Assembly: GCA_013416795.1 (NCBI GenBank)
Contig: RQSC01000004.1
Span: forward strand, 509,554 to 573,553
DNA: 64,000 nt
Reading direction: 5' to 3'
Origin: Prasinococcaceae sp. CCMP 1430
Lineage: Eukaryota > Plantae > Prasinodermophyta
Shown: positions 3,541 to 64,000 of the stretch, piece by piece
How positions within the stretch are numbered: the stretch's first letter is position 1
Layout of the letters: each line of letters begins with the position of its first letter
The notes under the pieces: model-generated
Told to the model about the DNA's origin: nothing
The model's input: the letters and a program-made list of their open reading frames with translations, nothing else
The model's database searches: none
Position numbers and translations under genes: made by a program

Positions 3541-5662
3541 TTAGGGAAATCCCGAGAACGCGCCGCGCCTGGTCTGTGGGGTCCCGGGCCTCTGCGCCAC
3601 TCCTCTGCCCTTGTCCGCCGGTTTGAGGATCTGGAAGCTGCACATGAGCGTCTCGTCGACTGACATCATCGCGCCCGCGTTGTCGAACTCGCCGCAGTAG
3701 TTTGGCGCCGAGAACACAGTCACCAGCTGTCGCTCAGCGAAGAACTCGTAGCCGTGCTCGACCACCTGGTGCGCCCGCACAACTAGGTCGAAGTTGAAAT
3801 GGTTGAGGAATTCCGTCACGACCTGCTTGCCAAAGACGTAGCTCACTCCTCTGTCGTTCTCGCCCCACCCCAGAATGTCTGGGTCTGGGTCAGCCCATAG
3901 GAAGTCGCACAACATGCCGTTGTCCGGGATGTCGGTAGGCCGCGGGATGTTTTGAATCTGCTCGAGGTTCTTCAGTTCGGGGCTCAGGCCGCCGTGGATG
4001 CAGAAGATGCGCTCGTCCACAACCGCAGCGAACGGCAGGCAGTTGAAGACGTCCATGAACATCTTCCAGGTCTTGATGTTGAACCTGCGCTTCACCTCGT
4101 CATAGAAGCCATAGATGCGGCTGATGGAGGCGCTTTCGTGGTTGCCGCGCAGCATGTGGAAGCAGTCGGGGTACTTGATCTTGTAACACAACAACAGCAT
4201 AGTCACCTCGACACCGTTGCGACCGCGGTCCACATAGTCGCCCAGGAAGAGGTACGAGGTGTTCGGCGGGTAGCCACCGTACTCAAATAGACGGAGCAGG
4301 TCGCTGAACTGGCCATGGATGTCTCCGCAGATTTTCACCGGCGCACTCAGCTCGAGCATACATGGCTGCTCGAGGAAGATCGCCCTACGGGTGTGCGCGC
4401 GATGGCGATGAGCGGGCGACCGAGCGACCGAGCGAGCGCGGGGTTGTCAGCAGTGCGATGACTTGCACAGCGTGCGGCGCCGCAATGCGCCGCGCTGCTG
4501 GTCTACTGCGCCTCCATGGTGCGCATCGCAGCGCGAGCTGAAGAGTCCGCAGATAGGAGGGGCGAAGGCCGCGCGACCTCTCTCCCGGCCGCAGGCCGAC
4601 GCGCTGCCGCCGCCCGCGATAACGCCCCCATGCGCCGAGACTGCCGCAACGTTCCCCTCCTTGCCACGGCACGCCGCACATGCCCGCGCAGGTGCCAGCG
4701 CCGCCCGCCCTAAGCGCACTCCTTCTCAAAAAAACGCTCGCAGGAGGGGCGCGGGGAAAAAAGTTGGTCGCGCGCTCACGGGAGCGCGCGCGAGACGCGC
4801 ACCAGCGCCCCTCCGCGCGCGCGCGTGGGGGGGCGCGCGCGCCTGCCCGCGCGCCCATGCTGACGGGCACACGCGTCTCTTTCGGTCGGAGATGGGCGCA
4901 GGGGGAGGGGCACGGGGGGCATGGGACACGGGCGCGCGCCAAAAGGATGCCGCGAGCTCGCGCGCGCACGGCGTGCCAATTTTTTTTCTCGCGGGCGATT
5001 TTTCCGAGCGAGTTTTTTCGCAGATGAACGCCCCGCGCCACCCCGCGCCGCGCCCCACCCCCCATCAGCGCCGCGCGTGGTCCTGGCTCACCCCACCCTC
5101 CGCCGCCGGCGCGTCCGATCGAGCGCGCGAGGTGCGCGGCGCGACGTACTTTGCCTTGGCGCACACGGTGCGGACCTCATCCTCGCTCAGCGGCACCGAC
5201 CGCTGTTGAAGCGCGTGCGCGCATTGGCGGGCGAGCCGCGGGCAGGGCGCGGGTCAGCGTCGCACCAACGCGTGCAAGCAGGGGGGAGATGAGGGGGTAA
5301 GGGGAGGCTCGAAAGGGGTGGGGTTGAGGAGCGGCATCTCGTTTACGCAACGCCCCGCGTGCGCATGCGCGGACGAGCGTGGTGCGAGTGGCCTTGGGGT
5401 GGGGGGTGGGGGGGGGTGCGCCGCGCCTGCGCTTGACCACCCCAAAGACGAGCACAGGAATTCGCCGGTGCGCGAGAAACGCCCTGCGACTGGGCGCGGC
5501 GCGCGCGGGGTGCGTGTCGGCGCGCGCGCGCGCGTCGCCCCGGCGTACCTGCGTCCTGTTGCCCCCAGCGCCAATGAGGCGGTTGATTAGGTCGTCGATG
5601 AGGTCGTCCCCCTTTGACGCCGTCGCGGCGCGGTCGGCCGCGCTCGCGCCCGACAGCGACAT
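3541..5662 (-). CDS. PP1: Serine/threonine protein phosphatase PP1 catalytic subunit, 3 exons (5662-5549, 5202-5150, 4384-3541)
   Basis: PPP motifs [35 protein letters not shown]. Exons join in frame through canonical GTACGC/GTACGT...AG introns. Confidence 0.97.
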
Positions 5663-14317: not shown

Positions 14318-17263
14318 TCAAGGCGCGCCGCTCGTGTCGGCGATCGCCGCGAGAAAGGTGTCCTTGTGCTGCGTCGGGACGAATTGCTCAAAGCCCGCCA
14401 GCAGCTGGGGAGTGCTGCGCAGCAACGCCACCACGCCCTGCAGCGTGCGCGCGGCCACGCCCGACGTCTCGCCCGCCCTGCCGCCGGCACCGGCACCGAT
14501 AGCTGCATCGCCACCAGAGCTGGCGCGATAGGCCTTCAGCAGACGCTTGAATTGCGCGTAGCCGTCCTTGGGCAGCGCGTCCTTGACACGAGCAATGTAC
14601 GCCACGCCGTCAGATGGCGCGCTCTGTGCCGCGACTTCTCCGGGGCCAGACCGCGCGGGCGCATCCGCCTCAGCTGCAGCTGCGCGCGCCGCCGCGAGCA
14701 GCCCACCCCCTCGTCGCGCCAGTTTGCTGGCGGGGGCACCGGCCGCGACTTGTGACGCCTGTCTGCGCGTGGCATCGCCGGACCCCTTCGCCAGCGCGCC
14801 GGCCAGCTTGTCGTACTCGGCCTGTAGGTTGAGCGCGTTCCCCGCCCTGGGCCCCAGTGGCCGTGCGGCACCTGCATCCCTGTCGCTGTACAGATCGGCG
14901 AGCGAGCCGCCGCCTATCCTCCGCTCGGGCGGCGCGGCGTACTCCCCCTGCTCCTGCCGGGCCTGCTGCTGTCGCATGAACGACGCCATGCCACTGAGAC
15001 CAGCGCCATTGCTCAGGCCGAGCGCCACAGGCGGTGGAGCGCGCGGGCGCGCCGCGACGGTCGCGCCGCTGAGCTGATGGGTCACACGTGCTGACTCGGC
15101 AGGCGCGGCCATGGCGGCCTTGCCCCGCGCTGCCCCGCGCGCCATCGCTTTGAAGAACTTGACCATTGCGCCTTGCGCCTCGCCAAAGGTGCCGAAGGTG
15201 TGCATGTGTGGGCGCAGCCATGCACTCATGTTGGCCTGCACCGCTGGCGAGCCGAAGCGCTCGTCCGCCAGGAGGATGGCGCCGTAGTCGTTTCGGTGGC
15301 GGATGACTCGGCCCACGGCCTGGTTGACGGCACGCATGGCCTGGTCGGAATACCACACGGCACCCGTCAGCCCTCCGCCTTTCCTGCCCGGCGCACTGCT
15401 TCCTCCGATCTCGCCCTTGCTCTTCTTGTCCAGGAAGTCCCGCTTGAGCTGAACCTTAGGGTCGACCTTCGGCGCGTAAGGTATGCCAGTGACCACGACA
15501 CAGCGTCCTGCACGGTCGGCGAAGTCGAGGCCCTCCGACACCTTGCCCCGGCACACAGCGAACATGACGGCACCGCCGCCCCCCGAGTCGAGGGCGGCGT
15601 TGAACTCCGCGAAGACCGCTCCCAGCTCCGACGTCTTTCTGGGCTCGACGAGAGCGTGCTTCTTGCTCGCGATGCGATCCCACTGCCCCCTCTCGCGCCA
15701 GTACTCCACGCAGCTTGCCAGCACGCCGTAGCTGGGAAAGAAAACCAGCATGCCGTCGGGTACCACGCGTGCAAGATTCACCAGGGCGTTGCCGAGCTCC
15801 TCCTTGTAGCTGGGCGTGTCGCGGCTCCTGAAAGAGGAGTTGAGGGGTACGCGCGAGGGGCCCGTAGGCAGCACGCCCACCATCACGTTGGCGGCGTCGA
15901 CCACGTGCGGGTTCTCCAAGCGGACCGGGAAGGGCAGGGCCAGCTCCTGTGCCGTCGACTCCATTGGTGCGAGCGTGCCCGAGGCGAGCACCACGCGGCT
16001 GAGGCCCAGCTCGAGTAGCGGCGCCAGCCCTGCCCCTGGGTTGAAGCACCAGTAGCTCACCACACGCTGCACCGTCACAGCGTCCCGCAGGCTGCCCCCG
16101 TCGCTGCCGCCCGCGCGTGGCATTTCATCGCGCACGTACAGCACGTAGTCGTGCGAGTCGCGCCGAGAGCGCTCGAGCGTGCGAATCGCGCGCGCGACGA
16201 TATCCATGCTGGGCGTTCCGCTGCCCACCGCCGACACGCCACCCAGGTTTGCGGCCTCGGCGGCCGCATCGGCGGCGCCCTCCATGCGCTCTATGAGCAT
16301 GGGCATATTGTCGCTGTCGATGCCAACGTCCACCAGCAAGCGATGCAGGTACACGCCGCGCTCGACGAGGCCCTTGGGGGAGGGTACAGTCAAGGCGGAC
16401 AGCGCGCGCTCAATCGCTTTCAGGACGACCACAAGCTGCTTCGCGTCCTCCGCCCCCGATCTGGCCATCGCGGCCTCCTCGGATGCGTCCGGTACGCCCA
16501 GCTGCTCGCCGTCGGCGGCTTGCTCCGCCGCCTGCGCGATGCGCTCTGCCTCCACGACGGCCGCGGCGAGTGTGGGCACCGGCAAGTCGAAGCTCGCCAC
16601 TTCCGCGCACACGCTCTCGATGTTATGTGCCTCGTCGAATATGACCACCGACGAGTGCCAGTCGATGCCCTTGAGCGCGCGCCTGTTGAGCGGGTCGAGC
16701 AGGTAATGGTATGGCAACAGTACCAGCTCGGCATCCTCGAGGCCCTCGCGGTTGACGAAGTACGGGCACGGCCCTTCCCTCTTGCCAAGCTCGACGAGTT
16801 CTTCGATGTCCATGGGCGGCATCTCGGGCGCCGTGCCCTCTGACTGTTGCGTGACCAGGTTGACGGCTGCACGGTGGTGGCGACACGCGCGCTGGTTCAC
16901 CATCGCCCTGCACGCGTTGTTGAGAGCGGCGCCGCGGAGTCGCCCCACGCTGCTGTGTATGCACGTGTGCTCGCGGCTCGACAGCACCACCGTGCGCGGT
17001 CTGTACCCCGTCTTGCGCAGCTCGCGCACGACCTGCGCGAGCTGCGAGTGCGTGCGGCTCGCGTACAGCACCTTGGTGCCGACCGGCCCACGCCCCTGCG
17101 CCGGCGCGGCGTCCGCCGGGGGGCGCACGTACACGTTTGCGCCCGCCTCCGCCTGCATCCGCTCGTGCGCGGCACGTGCCTGCGCGCGCGCGCGCTCGCG
17201 ACGGTGGCGCTGCCACGCGAGCGACGCGCACAGCAGGCAGAGCGTCTTGCCGGTGCCCGTCGG
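14318..17263 (-). CDS. RTEL1: RTEL1-like XPD-family Fe-S DNA helicase; native N-terminus absent
   Basis: PTGTGKTLCLLCASLAW, YASRTHSQL, Fe-S cysteines (HTC...NAC...RAC...PCPY), IFDEAHN, SGTLAP, VCRGKVSEGLDF, NQAVGRVIRHRNDYG, and a C-terminal harmonin-N-like domain. Confidence 0.95.
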   Translation of the reverse strand, partial: PTGTGKTLCLLCASLAWQRHRRERARAQARAAHERMQAEAGANVYVRPPADAAPAQGRGPVGTKVLYASRTHSQLAQVVRELRKTGYRPRTVVLSSREHTCIHSSVGRLRGAALNNACRAMVNQRACRHHRAAVNLVTQQSEGTAPEMPPMDIEELVELGKREGPCPYFVNREGLEDAELVLLPYHYLLDPLNRRALKGIDWHSSVVIFDEAHNIESVCAEVASFDLPVPTLAAAVVEAERIAQAAEQAADGEQLGVPDASEEAAMARSGAEDAKQLVVVLKAIERALSALTVPSPKGLVERGVYLHRLLVDVGIDSDNMPMLIERMEGAADAAAEAANLGGVSAVGSGTPSMDIVARAIRTLERSRRDSHDYVLYVRDEMPRAGGSDGGSLRDAVTVQRVVSYWCFNPGAGLAPLLELGLSRVVLASGTLAPMESTAQELALPFPVRLENPHVVDAANVMVGVLPTGPSRVPLNSSFRSRDTPSYKEELGNALVNLARVVPDGMLVFFPSYGVLASCVEYWRERGQWDRIASKKHALVEPRKTSELGAVFAEFNAALDSGGGGAVMFAVCRGKVSEGLDFADRAGRCVVVTGIPYAPKVDPKVQLKRDFLDKKSKGEIGGSSAPGRKGGGLTGAVWYSDQAMRAVNQAVGRVIRHRNDYGAILLADERFGSPAVQANMSAWLRPHMHTFGTFGEAQGAMVKFFKAMARGAARGKAAMAAPAESARVTHQLSGATVAARPRAPPPVALGLSNGAGLSGMASFMRQQQARQEQGEYAAPPERRIGGGSLADLYSDRDAGAARPLGPRAGNALNLQAEYDKLAGALAKGSGDATRRQASQVAAGAPASKLARRGGGLLAAARAAAAEADAPARSGPGEVAAQSAPSDGVAYIARVKDALPKDGYAQFKRLLKAYRASSGGDAAIGAGAGGRAGETSGVAARTLQGVVALLRSTPQLLAGFEQFVPTQHKDTFLAAIADTSGAP

Positions 17264-17650
17264 GCCGTTGATCAGCACGGTGATGTCGGATGCGGCGACG
17301 CGCTCGGCCAGCGCGAGCAGTGCCAGGCTCTCGGGATCGGCGGCGACGGGCTCGTGCGGGCCGCGCAGCAGCGCGGTCGCGAAGCCGGCACCGACCGCGG
17401 CGTCGTCCGAGGTATAGGAAAGGCGGGCGGGGTTGCCGTCGCCGAACGCGATCGCCTGGCGGCCTTCGTCGCCGAGGATCAGCGTGCGCGCGGCGGCCGG
17501 GGGCACTTCGCCTTCCGCCACCAGGAACAGGTCATGCGCGCTCGCGCGGCCGTCCTCGCCCGCGCCGATCGCAAAGCCCTGGGCCCGCAGCGACGAGACG
17601 AGCGCATATTTCTGGCGAAGCACGGCGGCCGACGGAAGGATGGATCGCAT
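17246..17650 (-). other. Bacterial sigma54-dependent (NtrC family; FlrC/FleR/FleQ-like) activator N-terminal fragment, fused in frame to RTEL1
   Basis: EPVAADPESLALLALAERVAASDITVLINGPTGTGK matches the start of the sigma54-activator AAA+ domain (family knowledge, recalled, not searched). Purine-rich GGGGG lies upstream of ATG 17650. Confidence 0.8.
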
Positions 17651-18285
17651 TGTTACCCCCTGAGACACATCCCCTTTTGAGACTAATCTGGTTAACGACG
17701 CGTAAAATTGCCCATTTCGAGACCGCTTTGGTCCGGGCGCGTCTACGCGTGCGCACGTAGAGCCGAAATTTTTCGCTTAAGCTGCGCGCGCGCCGCGTGG
17801 CGCTCGCCCTCCCGCTCTCCCCCTCCCCCTCCCTCGCGCGCACTCGCATTCGCGCCTGCCGCCGCCACCGGAACGCCGGCGCGCGCGCGAATTCGTACGG
17901 CGGTCGGCGGCAGAGGGTGCGATATTTGGGGTTTATGTTTAGGGTTGTGAAAGTGCCCCTTTTACTGCAACGCGACCCGCGCGCGAATTGGGCGCGGGTT
18001 GGAAACTCGAATTGCGTTTGCTTTTCGAAACTGCGTTACCGGTACGCGTTTTTTTTTCTGTTGCGCACGGGCTGTTGTGGGTTCGGCGGGGCGGTGATGG
18101 ACGCAGCGCGGCGGGGCGCGACGCGCGGCGACGCGGGGGGGACCACAGAGCGCGCGCGGGAGGGGGGGGGGCGCGCCGGCGGCCGGGCGCCGGGTGCCGA
18201 CCGCCCTCCTTCCGCGCGAAGCCGCGCGGAGCCCGCGGAGCCCACGCGCAAGCTCGGTCCGAAACGCGGCTTGACCGTTTCGAGC

Positions 18286-21200
18286 ATGGCGTCCGGCGAG
18301 GAGATGAGCATCGGCTTCGACGGGATGAAGAAGCTGCGCAACCTGGGCCGCCGCTTGCGGAGCAAGCTGGACAGCGGCGCCGAAGGCGCCGAAGGCGGTG
18401 GCGGAGGGGGTGGAGGAGGTGGAGGAGGCGGAGGTGCGCGGGGTCACCCGCGCGGGCGGCCGTATACGGGCGGGGCGGGCGGCGGGACGAGCGGAGCGGC
18501 GCAGCGCAGCGCGGCGGCCATCGCGGCTGCCGCGTCCGCCGACGCAGCCGCCAGGGAGGACGAGCTCAAGCGCCTTCGAGCGCGTGTGGAGCAGCTCGCG
18601 ACGGCCAACGAGGCGCTCGAGCGATACGCCGCCGACACGCGCGCGGCAGCCACGGCGATGGCCGCCGACGCGGCAGCGGGTGCGCCAGGCGCTGGCGCGG
18701 GGCGCGGGGTGGGCAGCGACGAGTCCCTGCGGCGCGCGAAGCAAGCGCTCAAAGACCAGGAGGCCGAGCTGTGGCGCCAGGGCGAGGAGCTCGAGGAGCG
18801 TGAGGAGGCGCTCGACGCGCGCGAGCGCGAGCTTGCTGCGCGCGAGCGCGAGGTGAGGCAGGCGAAGGCGCAGGGCGCGCCTCCAGGCGCGGGCGGCGCG
18901 AACGGGGCCGGCGCCGGCGGCGGTGCCTCCGAGGACGTTCTCCAGAAGAAGATGGTGAAGCTCAAAGCCTTCGAAGCCGAACTTCGATCGCGGCAGGAGA
19001 AACAGCGCGCGGCGGACGCGGAGCTGAAGCGGCGCGCGGCCGCCGCCGCGGAGAGCGCGGCTGCGGAGGCGCGGCGCATTGAGTCCACGCGCGACCAGCT
19101 CGACGCGCGCGAGGCCGACCTCAGCGCGCGCGAGGAGGCCGCTGGCGTGGCGCATCGCGAGATCGGGGAGAGGAGCGCGGCTCTCGACGCGCGCGCGCGC
19201 ACGCTGGACGAGCGGCAGTCAGAGCTCGAGGTGGAGAGAACGACCATGACCGAAAGCACTCGCGGCCTGCGCAGTGACCTGCAGCAGCTGGATGAGCGCC
19301 TCGCCAGCGGGGCCGCCGAGGCGGAGCGCGCCGCTGACGCGGCTCGCGAGCGTGTTGAGGCGCTCGAGGCGCAACTCGCTCGCGCGCAAGCGGAAATCGA
19401 TGCACTTCGTGCAGAGCGCGCGTTGCGGGAGGCAGCGTCCGCTCGTGCCGCGGCACTCCCGACGCCCGAGGCGCAGTCCGAGGAAATGAACGAGCCGCAG
19501 GGCGACTGGGGCGACGGTGACGACGGCCTCGATGTGGCGCTGCTCGATGCCGAGGCCGCAGGCGCACCCGACGTCGTCGGCGGAGGATCCCACGAGGACC
19601 ACGCGCAAACGGCGCTGCAGCGCAAGGTCGACGAAGCGGAGGGCGAAGCCGCAGCGCTGCGCGCCCGCGTCGACGAGCTCGAGGCACAACTCGAGACTAT
19701 GCCCCTCGAGGGCTCGCAGCAGCAGGTCCAGGCCGAGGAGGAGCATATCGCACGCGTAGCCAAGCTGGAGGCGGAGCTGTCGAGCGCCGTCGCCGAGTCG
19801 AATGCGCGCGCGGAGCGCGTAGCGGCGCTCGAGAGGGAGCTCGCCGAGGCATCCGGTGCGTCGGACGCACGCGCGTCTGATCTCGAGGCAAAGCTAGCCG
19901 AGGCACTCCATGCGAACGGCGAACGTATCAGCGAGCTCGAGGGCGCGCTCGCGGGGGCGTCGGAGGGCAGCGCGGAGCGGAGCGAGCGCGTCACTGAGCT
20001 CGAAACAGCCCTTGAGTCGTCTCGCGCAGAGGCATCCCTGGAGCTCGCAGATCGCTCGCGCCAAATTGAGGAGCTCGAGGCAAAGCTTGCGGAGGCGTCC
20101 GAAGAGCTGGGGTCCACCGAGCAGTCCAAGCGCTCGCAGCACGCTCGCGTGGCTGAGCTTGAGACGCAGCTGGCGCAACTCCAGGCTTCAACAACAGAGG
20201 CTGGCGCCGAGAGCGTCGCGCGCGTCAGCGCGCTCGAGGCGCGGCTGCAGGCCGCGCTCGGCGAGACAGCAGAGCAAAGCGAGCGGGTCGGCGCACTGGA
20301 GACAGATCTTCGCCGCGCGATGGAGCGCGCAGACGAGCTCGAGGGGGAGGCGGCGGCCGCGAGCGAGCGAGCGCGCGAGGCGGAGCGTGCAGTCGCTGCG
20401 GCTCAGGAGCGCGCCGAGTCGGCCGAGAAGTCGACGTCCCAGGCAGAAGCGGCGCTCGCGAGCTCCGAGGCGGCGCTGACGAGCGCGCGCGCGGACATGG
20501 CGCGTGCCGCAGAGGCGGCGACGAGCTCTGTCAGTGCCGCTGACGAGCGCGCGCTGGAAGCAATCGCCAAGCGGCGGGACGCCGAGAGTGCCGCGGAAGG
20601 GGTGGCCGAGGCGCACGCCGAGGAGCTCCAGGCGCTGCGCGACGAGCTCGGCGCGGCTCGGGCGCAGGCTGCCGAGTCGGAGCGCACCCTACGGGCGGCG
20701 GCTGACGGCGAGCGCGCCGCCACGATCGAGGCGGCGGCGCGCGCCGACCGCGCGGAGGAGGCGCTGCGCGCCACTGAGGCGTCCCTGGCCGCGGAGCGCG
20801 AATCTGGCGCGCAGCGCGAGGAGAGCATTGCACGCGCCCTCGATGAGTCCGATCGCTTGCAGCGGGAGCTCGAGGGCGCCACGGCGCGCGCCGAGGCGCT
20901 CGAGGGCGAGCTTGCTGGGGAGCGGGCGCGCGCTGCCGAGCGGGGCGCGGAGCTTGAGGCAGCGCACGCCGCTGCCACCGAAGAAATAGCGACGCTCGAG
21001 GAGGCCTCGCTCAAGCGTCTGGCGGCGCAAAAGAACAAATTCCACCGCGAGAGGGACACGGCCGCGCAGGCCGCCGCCGCCGCCGCCGAGGAGGCGCGCG
21101 CCGCGCAGGCGACTGCCGACGAGGCGCGCCGCGCGGCGGAGACCGATTCCGCCATGCCATCGACGCGGCTGACAATGCCGCGCGCTTCGTAGATGGGCAG

Positions 21201-21806
21201 AATGGGCGCGGTCTTGCCGCGATATTCGGCCATGCGGGTGCGCACCGTCTCTTCGTTATCGTCGGGGCGCCGTTTGGGCAGAAACTCTTTTCCGCAATTA
21301 TCGCAGATCATCGGAAACTCACCTGTGAGCGTCTCCGGTGGACCAGCAATAACGACGGTCTCAATTTTAGGGCGCTTATGTTTGTCGTGATAGCCCTCCC
21401 CGCAATGAGGGCAGCTAAAGCGGCCGGTGATGCGGTCGACCAGCGCGTCCTCATCCACCTCCAGTTCGATGACATGGTCGAGCGTGCGGCCGCGCGCGCC
21501 GAGGCGGCAACGACGGTCGACGACGCAGGGGCGGAGGCGGCGAAGGCGCGCGCGGAGTGCACGCTCGCGCGCGAGGAGCTCGGGCGTGCGCTCGCCGAGG
21601 CAGAGAGCGCGCGCGCTGAGCGCGACGCAGCCGAGGCGCGCCTGCAGGACAAGGCGCGCGAGGCGGGCATCCTGGAGGACCTGCTGCACTCGGTGCGCAA
21701 GGAAGGCGCCATGAGGGAGGCCGCCGAGGCCGCCGCGATCCCCTCCCTGCCCTCTGCCCTCGCGAGCTATCTGCCCTCGGGATTTTTCTCCCCGTCGTCG
21801 TCTTAG
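18286..21806 (+). CDS. Long coiled-coil protein (golgin/myosin-tail-like), interrupted at ~21148-21500; alternative start at 18097
   Basis: About 950 codons of heptad-rich E/A/R/L sequence. The same style resumes in another frame (AAARAEAATTVDD...LEDLLHSVRKE) after the foreign insert. Confidence 0.75.
21148..21500 (-). other. adk: Bacterial adenylate kinase internal fragment (LID zinc domain and flanks), antisense inside the coiled-coil gene
   Basis: RTLDHVIELEVDEDALVDRITGRFSCPHCGEGYH...CDNC...RRPDDNEETVRTRMAEYRGKTAPILPIYEARGIVSRVDGMA. Visibly more AT-rich than the flanks. Confidence 0.9.
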
Positions 21807-22158: not shown

Positions 22159-24858
22159 TCACATCGGGCAGTGGCCAATCCATTCCTCCTCTGCGGTGCG
22201 CCCTGCGCAGTCCATGCAGCAGCAGTCCTTCGCGATGAGGCAGTGCTCGTCACAGTAGCACGTGACGCCTTTGTACTTCTGGCAGTGCGTGCACCCGGAT
22301 GGACACCACTCCTCGGGGATGGGCAAGGAATCCTCGTGGTTTGGGCAGTGCATCGCCGTGGGCTCGGATGCAGCCGCACTGTCGCGCGGGCTCGTCGGAG
22401 CGTCGGTAGGCACGAAGCGCCCGCCGGGCGCGTCGGTCGGAATCACGGGCGACTCGCTCGGCACGACGCGACCGCCGGGCGCGTCCGTCGGCGTGATCGG
22501 CGACTTGGTGGGCGGGACGACTGGTGCCTCGGTCTGGGGGTCAGTCGGGCGCCCTCCGGGCGCGTCTGTCGGAATCACGGGCGACTCGCTCGGCACGACG
22601 CGACCGCCGGGCGCGTCCGTCGGCGTGATCGGCGACTTGGTGGGCGGGACGACTGGTGCCTCGGTCTGGGGGTCAGTCGGGCGCCCTCCGGGCGCGTCTG
22701 TCGGAATCACGGGCGACTCGCTTGGCACGACGCGCCCGCCGGGCGCGTCCGTAGGCGTGATGGGCGACTTGGTTGGCGGCACGACTGGTGCTTCAGTTTG
22801 GCGGTCAGTCGGGCGCCCTCCGGGCGCGTCTGTTGGAGTAACGGGCGACTCGCTTGGCACGACGCGCCCGCCCGGCGCGTCCGTTGGTGCGGTGACGGGG
22901 GCGTCGCTCCGAGCAAGCGCAGTCGGCATGTGCGTGGGTGTGTCGATCGGAACGGGCGCCGTCGGAGCGGGCGTCGGTTTGACGAAGTCGTTTGCACCGA
23001 AAGACGTAGTTGGCCTGGGCGTGGTTGGCGCGGGCGTGGGCGCTGAGGTGATCTGGTCTTCCACGTCTGGCACTGCCTCGGGGCCCAGCGCGGGGATGCC
23101 GACGGATCCGAAATTGAGCAGATCCTCATCGATGGCGTCCAGGAAGATGTTCACCCCGTCCTCATCGCCCCCGGGCCCCGGCGCGGGCGCGGGCACGGCG
23201 GCGGCCTCCGATGGCGACTTCAGCTGTGCGTCGATGGACTCCACTGCGTGCACCGAGGCTGGAGTCGGCTCTCCCAATGCAGGGGCCGGCAGCGGCGACG
23301 GGCCTGGCGCCGGAGCGGGCAGCGGCGACGGGCCTGGCGCCGGAGCGGGCAGCGGCGACGGGCCTGGCGACGGTTGGCGACGGCGCGGGCAGCGGCGACG
23401 GGCCTGGCGCCGGCGCTGGCGCAGGCGCGGGCCCGGGCTGCGGCAGCGGCTCTCGCTCGGGCGCAGGTTGCGGGAGCGACGCGCTCGCGTCGCCCGTTCC
23501 GATCAGCGCTTCATCGATGGCGGACACCGCCTCACTTTGGTCGTCGTCGTCCGAGGCGTCGCACGTAACCGCGCACGCAGTCATTGCCGCCGCTGGCGTC
23601 GGCTGCACCGACGAATACTCGCCCGCGTCGCACTGTGGTTCCGCATCGAGGACGGGCACGAGCGACAGCATGAGCGGCTGCGTGCTCGTGCCGTACTCAA
23701 GGAAGGCGCCCGTGTCCGTTGCGATCTCCTCGCCTGCACTGTTGTCGGCCATGAACTGAAGCGCGAGCGTGTAGTTCGCGCCGTCCGAAAGCGTGACATA
23801 CGGCGCGGGCGCGAGCGCCTCGCCGATGGTGAGGCCATCCGCGCACGCGGCTGGCAGTCCCGGCATTTGCTTGTCGCCGAGCGGATTGCCGTAAGGGCAT
23901 CCGCGCGAGAAGCGGTTGGGGTCGTTCTCGGTCTCGTGGTGGGAGAGCGGGAAGATGTACGAGTAGCGCTGCGCGGGTTGGCCGTCCGCGTCGCCGGGCT
24001 GCGTGATCTCGAGCGTGACGTTGAGGGCCATGGCCACCAGCGTAGGCAGAGCCTCCGTGGGCCAGTTGGCCATGCTGATCGCGCCCATCGGCACTCGCCG
24101 CGTCTCGCGCGCGCAGTCGGCGCGCGAGCTGTGCGAGCGCGCCGAGGGGGCGCGAACGCCCGGCAGCGCCGTCTGCGCAGAGGCGTCCGCCACCACGCGA
24201 TACGTGTTGCGCATGGAGCTACCGGCGACGGGCTGCCCCCAGGTGAGCGACGTGGCCTCCTCAGCGTTGGGCTCGTACAGAGGCGGGCTGCTGGCAGCCA
24301 TCGACAGGGGCAGCTGCACGGCCCCTAAGATGTGCGCGGAGAGCACGCGCACCTCGCCCAGGCAGCACGCGCCAAAGAGGCTGTTGTAGCCTATGAGGTC
24401 GACGGAGCCGGTACCGCCCACCAGGTCCTCGTCGATGGAGCTGGCGGCCGCAATGTCGTTGTTGGCCGGCAACACTGTTTGTGGGTTAGTGAGGGGGGGG
24501 GGATGGGGTCATGCGCGATGGGATGCACGCGTCGCGGAAGCCTGGAGTCAGCGCGCGCGGAGCGTCCTTTCAGTCTGGCCAGGCAAAGCGCGCGACGCGA
24601 TGCCCGCGACAGAGTGCAGGGATTTTCGCCAGGGGTGAATGCACAACGAGTGGTGCGAAGACACGCAAGGAGCGCGCGACGAGTAAGTAGGTGCGCACCG
24701 TGCTCCTCGGCGACGACGACGAGGCCTCCGAAAGGCACCTGCGGGGCCGCACTTTCGGCCATCGCGCGCGGCGCTGCCAGCAGGATCGCGCACGACCCGC
24801 CGGCGGCCGCCAGTGCGAACCGCGCGAACGAGGGGGTGCCATTGCCGCGCGGCGCCAT
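22159..24858 (-). CDS. Secreted/cell-surface mucin-like protein with Pro/Thr repeats and a C-terminal somatomedin-B-like Cys domain; exon 1 24858-24699, exon 2 from 24474; apparent frameshift ~23372
   Basis: Signal-like MAPRG...FALAAAGGSCAILLAAPRAMA. Intron GTGCGC...ACTAAC...ACAG joins in phase. C-terminal TCYCDEHCLIAKDCCCMDC. Confidence 0.75.
22410..22890. repeat. Coding tandem repeat, 132-bp (44-aa) unit, ~3.5 copies, with internal PTDAPGGR sub-repeats
   Basis: aatcacgggcgactcgct recurs at 22441, 22573 and 22705. Confidence 0.95.
23285..23420. repeat. 30-bp tandem repeat (PAPAPGPSPL on minus strand)
   Basis: ggcagcggcgacgggcctggcg at 23288, 23318 and 23348, plus a degenerate copy. Confidence 0.9.
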
Positions 24859-25092: not shown

Positions 25093-25265
25093 NNNNNNNN
25101 NNNNNNNNNNNNNNNNNNNNNNNNNNNNNNNNNNNNNNNNNNNNNNNNNNNNNNNNNNNNNNNNNNNNNNNNNNNNNNNNNNNNNNNNNNNNNNNNNNNN
25201 NNNNNNNNNNNNNNNNNNNNNNNNNNNNNNNNNNNNNNNNNNNNNNNNNNNNNNNNNNNNNNNNN
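25093..25265. other. Assembly gap (N run)
   Basis: Run of N. Confidence 1.
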
Positions 25266-26134
25266 GCCGGGCTGCCGCCGCGACTGCGGCCCGCTCCGCG
25301 CGGCGGGGGGAGGCGCCAACCCGTCCCCCGAGGCGCCCGGGGCCGCGCACACGCACGCGAATTTTGCGAATCGCGTCTGATTGTCTCCCGTGGTCAGATA
25401 TGACATCATTTCATAATAGGTTACGATGTGGTTGGCGGCGGTGGCGCCGGCGCGTCGTCGAAGGACTGAATCGGCGATTCGGGGCGAATCGGCGCGATCG
25501 AAGCACGGTCGTCCTCACACCACACAACCTCACCGACAATTTCTGATCCCGCTCCTCGGAGGAGTGTCCGGGCGCGCGGGGTTTGGAATGAGTGGCGTCG
25601 CAAAGAGGCGGACTCTTTTCCTGCGATGCGCTCGGATCGGACGCCCCCACGCCTCGAGAGCGCCTCGATCGAGCCGCTCGATCACAGCGCAGGCATCGAT
25701 GAATGCGTGCACACACGAGATCTGATAGTGCTGGTTGTGGAGTACTGTAATGTAATTGGACGCGACTGGTCCTGTGATTGGACACGTGTACGAACGTCGA
25801 GGCTTCCAGGTGGCACGCACGTGGATGCGCCTGCGGTCACTTCACCAATGCCTGGAACCCATTCTGGTGCCTACCATGGATATATACATATCACTCTAGA
25901 ACTACAGTACTTTTGAGTCCCTTATCACTTTGTGGGATGGGTAGTGCGGCGTCATCCCGTGGCCGGTGGGACCGCCGCTGGCCACTCGACGCAGGCACTC
26001 GTTTGGGAGGCCACGTGCCTGACTCGCGCCCTGCGGGGGTGGCGCGACTCTGCGTGCGACGAGCACCTGCCCACCGCCTGGCCGCCGCGGGGCGAGGCAC
26101 GGCGCCAGGCGAAGGGAGGGGGTGGCAGTGGGAG

Positions 26135-61819: not shown

Positions 61820-64000
61820 TCAGGGTTCAGGGCTCGGGGCCGCGGTGTCGCCAGCAGCCCCCTCATCGACTTTTCCTTCATCCTCCTCGCCCTCGCCTGC
61901 CTTTTGGCTCGCGCTCGTCGCCACGCGCGCGCTCCTGAGCTTGGACAGCTTGGTGCGCGCCGCGCGCCGCGCCGCCGCGCCGTGCTCGAGCACCGCCGAC
62001 AGCACGGGAATTGCGAACACCATGCCCGAGGTGACCACCAGCAGGGCGCCGATCACCCGCCGGTCGTTCGTGCCGCCGACGGTCTCTACCTTGACCAGCA
62101 GGCCGGCGAAGAGGATGAGCGCGATCTCGACGAGCGCCGCCTGTGCGGAGCGGTCCACCGCGGCGTCCGCGAACGGGCTGAGCGCCAGGTTGGCCACGAG
62201 AAAGAAGCAGGCGACGAGAAGCCCGACGGCAATCTGGCCGCTCCCGCCGGCGTCGACGAAGACCAGCGCGCCGGTCAGCACCAGCTTGCGCAGCAGCTCC
62301 ACCAGCTCCCAATACCAGCACTCGGTGTGGTAGGAGGCGAAGAGCTGGCCGCAGTGGCGCATCGCGAGCGCCTCGTCCGCATCGAGCGGCCCGTTGATAT
62401 CGTCGGCAAGGCGCTCCCCGACAAGAAACGTCCCGACGGCCGTCCCGGCCGCAGCGCCCCTCGCGCTGGCGCTCGACTTGGCGCCGAAACAGAGCTCGCC
62501 GACCGGAGCGTGCGCAGCCGCCCACGCGACCAGCGCCTCGCGCGCCGCACCGTCGTCGGCGGCGAAGGAGGCCGCTCGCGATGCCTTCCCCGACCGTGGC
62601 GACGCGGGTCCGTCCTCGCCCTGCCCGGCGGTCTTGGACTGCGGCGACGCGGGGGTGTCACCGCCGGGCCGCTGGGCATTCTCCGACCCGTCGCCGGCGA
62701 GCGTTTGCGCGAGCCTCGTCCCGACGCGCACCTCGCCCTCGAAGAGCTGCTCGAGGGTGGCGCGCTCGCGCAGCAGGCGGCGCATCTCCATGCCGAGCAC
62801 GGCGTCGACCTCATCGGCGTCCTCGTTGAGCGCGATGCCCACCAGGAGGGCGTTGCGCGCCACGGCGCGGCTGCGGTGCCTGGCGGCGATGGCGGGCACG
62901 CCGTGGCGGAGCATGGCCAGCAGGAAGAAGAGCGGGATGCCCGCCACGTAGAGAGCAATGCCGACGGACGCAAGCATCTCCGCGCGCTCGTGCGCGGCGG
63001 TGTCGCATCGCAGGCGCAGGTCGCTCGAGAGCCAGCGCGCGCCGTCCACCTCGCGGCAGTGAAACGTCTTCAGCAGCGTGGCCGACAGAATGGGGTAGAC
63101 CAAGAAGAGGGCGAACAGCGAGTTGCGCCACACGTTGGCGCGGAAGCGCGCCAGGCGAGGGCGGAGGGCCTCGTCGCCGCCGGCGTAGAGGCGACCCGCC
63201 GCGTACAGCAGGAGCGTCGCGACGCCCAAGGCCGCCGGAGCGCACAGCCACAGCCACAGCTTGTCGAAGAAGTCCCACGTTTCCAGAGAGCAGCGTGCGC
63301 TGGGCAGCGCCAGCACGTCCAGGTTGATCACCTTGAGCGCCTTCACCATGTCAAGGAAAGCCTTCGGCCAGGGAATGTCAAAGGTCACATCCACCGTTGC
63401 GACGACCTGCACGAAGGCGATCAGCACGCGCGCGTGCGCCGCTGCGCTGCTGCGCTCGAGGCGACGCTCGACAGACTCCGCGGTCTCCGCGACGGTCTCG
63501 GACGCCTCGCGGCTCAGCTTCCGACCCAGCTGCGTCTTCTTCAAGTTGTCGCCATTGGCAAACGCTTCGTAAAAACTCGCCATGCGTTTCAGAGCGCCGC
63601 TCACCAGGGCTGCGAGACGCGGCAGGAATGGCAGCCAGTAGAGCAGCACAACGACGAGCGCGAGCGCGAGAATTGCAGCCACCGCGCCGACCCACACGCT
63701 TCCACTCGCCTGGCACGACGAGCATCCATCGCTCTCCGAGTAGCCATACCCCGGCTCGCACACCGCGCACAGCATGCCGTCGTAGCCGTAGTCGCAGCGC
63801 CACGACGAGTCGGCCGCGTCCTCGAGGCCGGCCTCCAACAGCGCGCGGCGGCTCGCACTCGAGCTAGCAGCGCGGGCGCCCTCCCCTCCACCTCCGTGCC
63901 CGCGCGGCGCGTGCTCGGGGAGGCACGCGGTGGGAAAGGGGCACGAGTAGAACACGGGCGAGCTCATGTTTTCGCGCCAGTAGCCCGCCATGCCGCTCGG
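61820..64000 (-). CDS. Cys-rich (TNFR/ephrin-like) extracellular region followed by a multi-pass TM domain; 5' part outside window
   Basis: CDYGYDGMLCAVCEPGYGY...CSSC, then IAFVQV...IPWP, YPILSATLLKTFHC, WLSSDLRLRC, WYWELVELLRKL and several hydrophobic helices. Confidence 0.8.
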   Translation of the reverse strand, partial: PSGMAGYWRENMSSPVFYSCPFPTACLPEHAPRGHGGGGEGARAASSSASRRALLEAGLEDAADSSWRCDYGYDGMLCAVCEPGYGYSESDGCSSCQASGSVWVGAVAAILALALVVVLLYWLPFLPRLAALVSGALKRMASFYEAFANGDNLKKTQLGRKLSREASETVAETAESVERRLERSSAAAHARVLIAFVQVVATVDVTFDIPWPKAFLDMVKALKVINLDVLALPSARCSLETWDFFDKLWLWLCAPAALGVATLLLYAAGRLYAGGDEALRPRLARFRANVWRNSLFALFLVYPILSATLLKTFHCREVDGARWLSSDLRLRCDTAAHERAEMLASVGIALYVAGIPLFFLLAMLRHGVPAIAARHRSRAVARNALLVGIALNEDADEVDAVLGMEMRRLLRERATLEQLFEGEVRVGTRLAQTLAGDGSENAQRPGGDTPASPQSKTAGQGEDGPASPRSGKASRAASFAADDGAAREALVAWAAAHAPVGELCFGAKSSASARGAAAGTAVGTFLVGERLADDINGPLDADEALAMRHCGQLFASYHTECWYWELVELLRKLVLTGALVFVDAGGSGQIAVGLLVACFFLVANLALSPFADAAVDRSAQAALVEIALILFAGLLVKVETVGGTNDRRVIGALLVVTSGMVFAIPVLSAVLEHGAAARRAARTKLSKLRSARVATSASQKAGEGEEDEGKVDEGAAGDTAAPSPEP

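Follow-up and report, generated by a model that had tools for sequence, protein, structure and literature searches.

A Sphingomonas fragment joined in frame to RTEL1 in a Prasinoderma coloniale draft sequence: a probable assembly chimera

The DNA analyzed here is a stretch of 64,000 nucleotides (nt) from Prasinococcaceae sp. CCMP 1430 (GenBank assembly GCA_013416795.1, contig RQSC01000004.1, positions 509,554 to 573,553 of the forward strand), referred to in full as the window. It contains an uninterrupted minus-strand open reading frame (ORF) of 1116 amino acids (aa), 14318..17668, that starts as the N-terminus of a bacterial sigma-54 activator and switches to the DNA helicase RTEL1 at the Walker A motif PTGTGK. 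Across the switch point the protein reads ...LALAERVAASDITVLINGPTGTGK|TLCLLCASLAW (in a wider reading, ...AASDITVLINGPTGTGKTLCLLCASLAW...). Sphingomonas-type sequence has here replaced algal sequence between two identifiable junctions, and the native version is present in the same genotype. Judged from the sequence comparisons below, the ORF is very probably not a real fusion gene (probability about 0.93): contaminant Sphingomonas sequence would have been spliced in during assembly or gap closure.

The bacterial segment and its junctions

When prokaryotic genomes, one for each species, were scanned, ORF residues 1-141 matched 122 confirmed loci of the Sphingomonadaceae type; among the 80 matches listed of these 122, the majority carried the name of Sphingomonas or of a related sphingomonad. 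Sphingomonas sp. Sphisp66, the best match, is 91% identical in aa over all 141 residues, and the nt identity over window positions 17796-17246 is 87.7%. All bacterial alignments end exactly at 17246, the last base of the GGCAAG that forms the G-K codons. The 5' part of a Sphingomonas flbD/flrC-like sigma-54 activator gene occupies 17265..17650 on the minus strand (91% aa and 88% nt identity to Sphisp66) and encodes the N-terminal regulatory domain plus the first ~30 AAA+ residues. The bacterial gene starts with the ATG at 17650-17648; the alignments of most homologues begin at ORF residue 7. Upstream of it, 17651..17782 on the minus strand is a Sphingomonas intergenic/promoter region of ~130 bp, 86% identical to the DNA preceding the Sphisp66 gene. 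It includes a GGGGG ribosome-binding site (17660-17656) 5 nt before the ATG, and conserved GCTTAAGC..AAAAATTTCGGC and GTTAACC blocks. The GC content of 17669-17782 is 51% versus roughly 70% for the genome.

The full-length Sphisp66 homologue (L001:2998-4278) has 426 aa with Sigma54_activat, AAA lid and HTH_8 domains. Its gene lies between flagellin and fliE-fliF, and by this position it is classified as a FlbD/FleR/FlrC-type flagellar activator. The top NCBIfam matches were NifA (309.1 bits) and FlbD (308.2 bits), all under the equivalog cut-offs, hence a generic family assignment. In this homologue the PF00158 profile is matched at positions 6-167 with 223 bits, and HTH_8 is present. The window ORF has the N-terminal regulatory domain, homologous to that of sigma-54 activators with flagellar gene context. 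Its residues 111-155 match PF00158 at positions 5-46 of 168 only (18.1-19.5 bits, under the 20.2 cut-off); neither a complete Sigma54_activat AAA+ domain nor a C-terminal Fis-type HTH_8 was found in it by Pfam. Because the piece stops at Walker A, without Walker B, the GAFTGA loop, the lid and HTH_8, it cannot act as an activator.

Differences between the window and Sphisp66 are distributed 11/1/37 over the three codon positions, with 31 synonymous and 11 nonsynonymous codon changes, a pattern that reads as ordinary divergence between two living bacteria, without decay. Signs of residence in a host genome (compositional adjustment, decay) were not found in the bacterial piece; the ORF is intact and the upstream region stays at 51% GC. 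An ancient, domesticated horizontal gene transfer (HGT) is rejected, the piece being undecayed and missing in wild populations.

The rest of the ORF, residues 142-1116 (14318..17245, minus strand), is the native Prasinoderma coloniale RTEL1 coding sequence, intronless here, with 100% aa identity to the P. coloniale gene model PRCOL_00005520-RA and 98.5% nt identity to environmental contigs of the TARA and Logan collections. Pfam places DEAD_2 (PF06733, 165 bits), ARCH_RTEL1 (PF23109, 40 bits) and Helicase_C_2 (PF13307, 176 bits) in ORF residues 202-820.

Junction 1, located by comparing the window, a TARA contig and Sphingomonas, is the 19-nt Walker A sequence CCCGACGGGCACCGGCAAG encoding P-T-G-T-G-K (17246..17264, minus strand). 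It is identical in the native alga and agrees at 16-18 of 19 positions (one to three mismatches) in Sphingomonas relatives. The window follows the bacterium on one side of it and the alga on the other, the source changing somewhere within. Since the PTGTGK codons stand in the same frame in both genes, any join inside CCCGACGGGCACCGGCAAG is in frame and the long ORF needs nothing more. Junction 2, the return to algal sequence, lies in a GCGCGCGCGC run at 17781..17796, directly before the GCTTAAGC block conserved in the bacteria; colinearity with the native contigs stops at 17781 and the bacterial alignment fades over 17782-17796, leaving the switch base ambiguous within this GC-only run. Both junctions, the 19 nt and the GC-only run, thus fall in shared or ambiguous sequence, as expected of a contaminant assembly chimera.

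Much of this had been anticipated in a preliminary description of the same DNA. The in-frame activator/RTEL1 ORF switching at PTGTGK, proposed there, is borne out by 14318..17668 (minus strand), and the RTEL1 identity to the right of the switch by the three Pfam domains. The bacterial search it suggested returned the Sphingomonas match at 91% aa and 87.7% nt; that match and the flagellar gene context confirm its guess of a Sphingomonadaceae, FlrC/FleR-like protein. Both the Shine-Dalgarno-like GGGGG and the bacterial-style upstream region it had pointed out match Sphingomonas intergenic DNA. Its span of 17246-17740 was correctly located but slightly short, the piece reaching to about 17782-17796, and the shared stretch in which it rightly placed the switch is 19 nt long rather than 18.

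The native form of the locus

When the full ORF was searched against proteins, a match of 1137 aa was obtained, with 99% identity in the RTEL1 part and another N-terminus. The 90% cluster of this protein includes PRCOL_00005520-RA of P. coloniale (EukProt EP00793), which equals the window ORF at 981/981 aa from PTGTGK to the stop, whereas environmental proteins differ at 6-7 residues; the window therefore represents the genotype of the annotated genome. PRCOL_00005520-RA begins with a canonical RTEL1 N-terminus before Walker A, with a FPY.PY..Q-type motif, and a normal N-terminus is also found in the TARA proteins P0001, P0192 and P0196. By tblastn, the native RTEL1 N-terminus was not found anywhere in the 64-kb window. 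The gene model having the native start and the same genotype, another assembly of that genotype must hold the normal 5' end. The preliminary description had estimated that ~45 N-terminal residues of RTEL1 were absent; the absence stands, and the missing part measures 66 residues if unspliced and 33 according to the annotated model.

The same picture emerges from four environmental contigs (metagenome scaffolds of three TARA samples, and one assembly from Logan). They follow the window colinearly for up to 13 kb, with about 98% nt identity, and share its gene order, glutamine synthetase, RTEL1 and a coiled-coil gene. All four lose colinearity at window positions 17265 and 17781. Between these points they carry 383-397 bp of native sequence versus 501-516 bp in the window, and the bacterial piece resembles nothing in any of the four. 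With a GC content of 79% and long GGC runs, the native segment includes the leader of RTEL1 and its first 66 codons. Independent sequences of the same strain or species, the gene model and the four contigs, are thus native at this site; in each of them is the normal RTEL1 N-terminus that had been named in advance as the mark of an artefact. The chimeric 1116-aa ORF itself has no record in a collection of 15 billion proteins. Neither the window glutamine synthetase nor PRCOL_00005520-RA had a record in the contig collection by exact look-up. A 35-nt pattern fitting the native and chimeric versions alike had no match in JGI metagenome contigs, a result that is uninformative. RTEL1 of the alga is normal, and nothing speaks for a fusion protein of bacterial and eukaryotic parts. 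A fusion working as a regulator or as a helicase is rejected, given that most of the activator AAA+ domain, its helix-turn-helix and the RTEL1 segment before Walker A are missing.

The annotation of the native N-terminus has a peculiarity of its own. PRCOL_00005520-RA removes as an intron a 99-nt GT..AG stretch that encodes a Gly-rich run, VIASLGGGG...GRGQ (L081:6271-6470, P0190). As this stretch is in frame and varies in length among environmental alleles (1137 versus 1141 aa), it may be coding rather than an intron.

Origin of the chimeric sequence

A second foreign piece lies 3.4 kb from the first. The native gene for the coiled-coil protein, divergent from RTEL1, runs on the plus strand from 18115 (start taken from the gene called on contig L082) to 21146, where it is interrupted; it is 97.9% identical in nt to L081-L083, the three environmental contigs covering the site. 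The interruption, at 21147..21485 on the minus strand and antisense to the coiled-coil gene, is a Sphingomonas-like adenylate kinase (Adk) fragment with the LID and C-terminal part, identified by NCBIfam adenylate kinase matches, and it truncates the coiled-coil ORF. Overall identity to Sphingomonadales Adk is 70-74%, and identity to the Adk of a Sphingomonas metagenome-assembled genome is about 85% outside a 19-residue insertion in the LID region, which is unusual. In place of 21147-21485, L081-L083 have 13 bp of GC-only native sequence. The bacterial similarity extends a few codons into one GC-only flank, so that there is shared sequence at the second piece too. A chimeric assembly is expected to carry further fragments of the same contaminant, and 21147-21485 is such a fragment. 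For the coiled-coil neighbour (query L082:670-4059), no PRCOL model was found at E <= 1e-50, low-complexity words probably swamping the candidates. Exact look-ups of two environmental coiled-coil proteins were also without result, and the absence of the second piece from the native locus rests on L081-L083.

The provenance of the window is relevant to both pieces. The published P. coloniale CCMP1413 genome was produced with PacBio and NextDenovo from an axenised culture, comprises 22 chromosomes, and was screened for contamination contig by contig through a search against nr (PMC7455551). The window, by comparison, contains N runs of 1-570 bases, and its genome is indexed as at least 184 pieces; it evidently comes from another, draft-grade assembly of the same strain. 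No literature naming Prasinoderma together with Sphingomonas was found.

A contaminant origin is favoured because the native gene is present in the same genotype and in wild populations, because two GC-extreme sites separated by 3.4 kb each hold an undecayed Sphingomonas-like fragment that breaks a gene, and because the joins are in shared or ambiguous sequence of a gapped draft assembly. The step at which the error arose, we infer, involved contaminant reads, a coverage dropout and gap filling. The draft assembly would contain reads from a contaminating Sphingomonas species. At the hard-to-sequence native segment, with its 79% GC and GGC runs, algal coverage would probably fail, and the assembler or a gap-closer would bridge the break with bacterial sequence, using as anchors the 19 nt encoded by both organisms (the P-loop PTGTGK in the same high-GC codons) and the GC-only run. 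About 0.4 kb of native DNA (the RTEL1 5' leader and first 66 codons) has been exchanged for ~0.5 kb of Sphingomonas DNA (the intergenic region and first 135 codons of the flagellar sigma-54 activator). As the join is inside the codon-aligned motif, the frame is kept and a 1116-aa "fusion" ORF appears. The preliminary description had likewise preferred a contaminant joined through microhomology, a view that the same-genotype gene model and the environmental contigs support. It is recognised that chimeric sequence can arise in silico when similar regions of different organisms are merged (PMC8862208).

Some features of the locus count against this explanation. The sequence is joined without a gap, the nearest N lying 7 kb away; the junction evidence consists of assembled sequence; and the second piece replaces only 13 bp, unlike a classic filled gap. 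The sequenced culture line may, as a formal possibility, differ from the annotated one. Junction microhomology, moreover, is also a signature of real end-joining capture of foreign DNA. A genuine and very recent integration would mean that Sphingomonas fragments were captured at nuclear double-strand breaks by microhomology-mediated end joining, deleting the RTEL1 5' end and making a genuine fusion in frame, and that another fragment was captured in the adjacent gene. Such joining predicts first-piece junctions in short shared or GC-only sequence, which is where both lie, but the perfect overlap of 19 nt is long for end joining in vivo and is the kind of match that a program seeking overlaps would easily find among millions of contaminant reads. 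The lack of decay in the piece is as compatible with a very recent event as with contamination, and the sequence is contiguous without Ns; against this, both the gene model of the same genotype and every one of the four environmental contigs have the native N-terminus. It is also unlikely that a presumably haploid clonal culture would keep two independent captures at a distance of 3.4 kb, both of them disrupting a gene, and one of the disrupted genes encodes a conserved genome-maintenance helicase that would be left without its pre-Walker-A segment. Genuine capture is accordingly given very little credence here, and a real homology-mediated HGT, the alternative offered in the preliminary description, is improbable. 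If true, the capture would be a snapshot of DNA passing from an associated Sphingomonas to the alga as it happens.

Slightly less credible still is a physical chimera formed during library preparation or amplification, by template switching or ligation at the shared P-loop, and then faithfully placed by the assembler without being genomic. It would explain the gap-free join without any gap-closer, and template switching does favour short identical stretches such as the 19-nt overlap. With two junctions per piece and two pieces in 4 kb, however, it calls for four independent in-vitro events at one locus, avoidable only if coverage were so low that single reads set the consensus. Biologically a library chimera equals an assembly chimera: both are artefacts.

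Window context, implications and related systems

The window as a whole is about 70% GC, and the N run nearest to the fusion site is 7 kb away. In a 5-mer likelihood scan (Sphingomonas versus alga), the three segments of the window that deviate most include both bacterial pieces. The remaining one, 3851-4350, is a false positive that belongs to a eukaryotic PP1 phosphatase gene; another scan region, 62001-62300, is inside a long eukaryotic ORF, and the scan is therefore non-specific. No further bacterial pieces were found in the 64-kb window by this non-specific scan. The PP1-type Ser/Thr phosphatase catalytic subunit is encoded without introns at 3541-4359 on the minus strand, and its k-mer deviation is as strong as that of the bacterial pieces. 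The gene is eukaryotic by sequence, and the deviation probably reflects the codon-usage bias of a highly expressed gene. In the 3' part of the coiled-coil gene region, 22400-23400 contains tandem repeats to which the environmental contigs align in several overlapping registers at 84-97%; the repeat copy number appears to differ between the window and these contigs. The alignment of the TARA contig L083 ends exactly at the start of the N run 25093-25265, which is thus a true unfilled gap in the algal sequence. The first 400 bp after this run, 25251-25650, are mild 5-mer outliers (z about 2.3).

The P. coloniale draft assembly carries gap-free, sub-kilobase Sphingomonas fragments inside algal genes, where contig-level contamination screens do not see them and automated pipelines would count them as HGT or as new domain fusions. 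In high-GC genomes, the identical bases of a conserved nucleotide-binding motif can be enough to seed false joins of this kind. Since bacterial HGT has been invoked as an adaptive factor in the published P. coloniale paper (PMC7455551), fragment-level chimeras should be removed before HGT is counted from the draft assembly.

The two halves of the ORF resemble well-known proteins. Like the RTEL1 of green plants, an XPD-family Fe-S DNA helicase, the window ORF has DEAD_2, ARCH_RTEL1 and Helicase_C_2 domains and a C-terminal harmonin-homology region, and its identity to plant and animal RTEL1 is 34-44%. Unlike green-plant RTEL1, it is without the native segment preceding Walker A, which the same-genotype model and the environmental contigs have. 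The Sphingomonas flagellar sigma-54 activator is 91% identical in aa over the first 141 residues and 86-88% identical in nt over this coding part and the upstream region; the window piece differs from it in ending at Walker A, short of all the later elements of the protein.

Foreign or organellar DNA is known to be captured at double-strand breaks by end joining, as in the formation of nuclear mitochondrial (NUMT) and nuclear plastid (NUPT) DNA and of filler DNA. The present case is like these in its short foreign fragment, small native deletion and junction microhomology. Insertions of that kind, however, occur in every assembly of a strain, whereas the window segment is missing from the annotated model of the same genotype. 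The closest parallel is with the contaminant-derived chimeric contigs of eukaryotic drafts that give rise to false HGT calls (PMC8862208). As in those contigs, bacterial sequence without decay is enclosed by eukaryotic sequence, the two are joined where the organisms resemble each other in sequence, and independent assemblies of the species lack the segment. Unlike those contigs, the piece described here is only about 0.5 kb long and gap-free on both sides, so that screening at the contig level would miss it.

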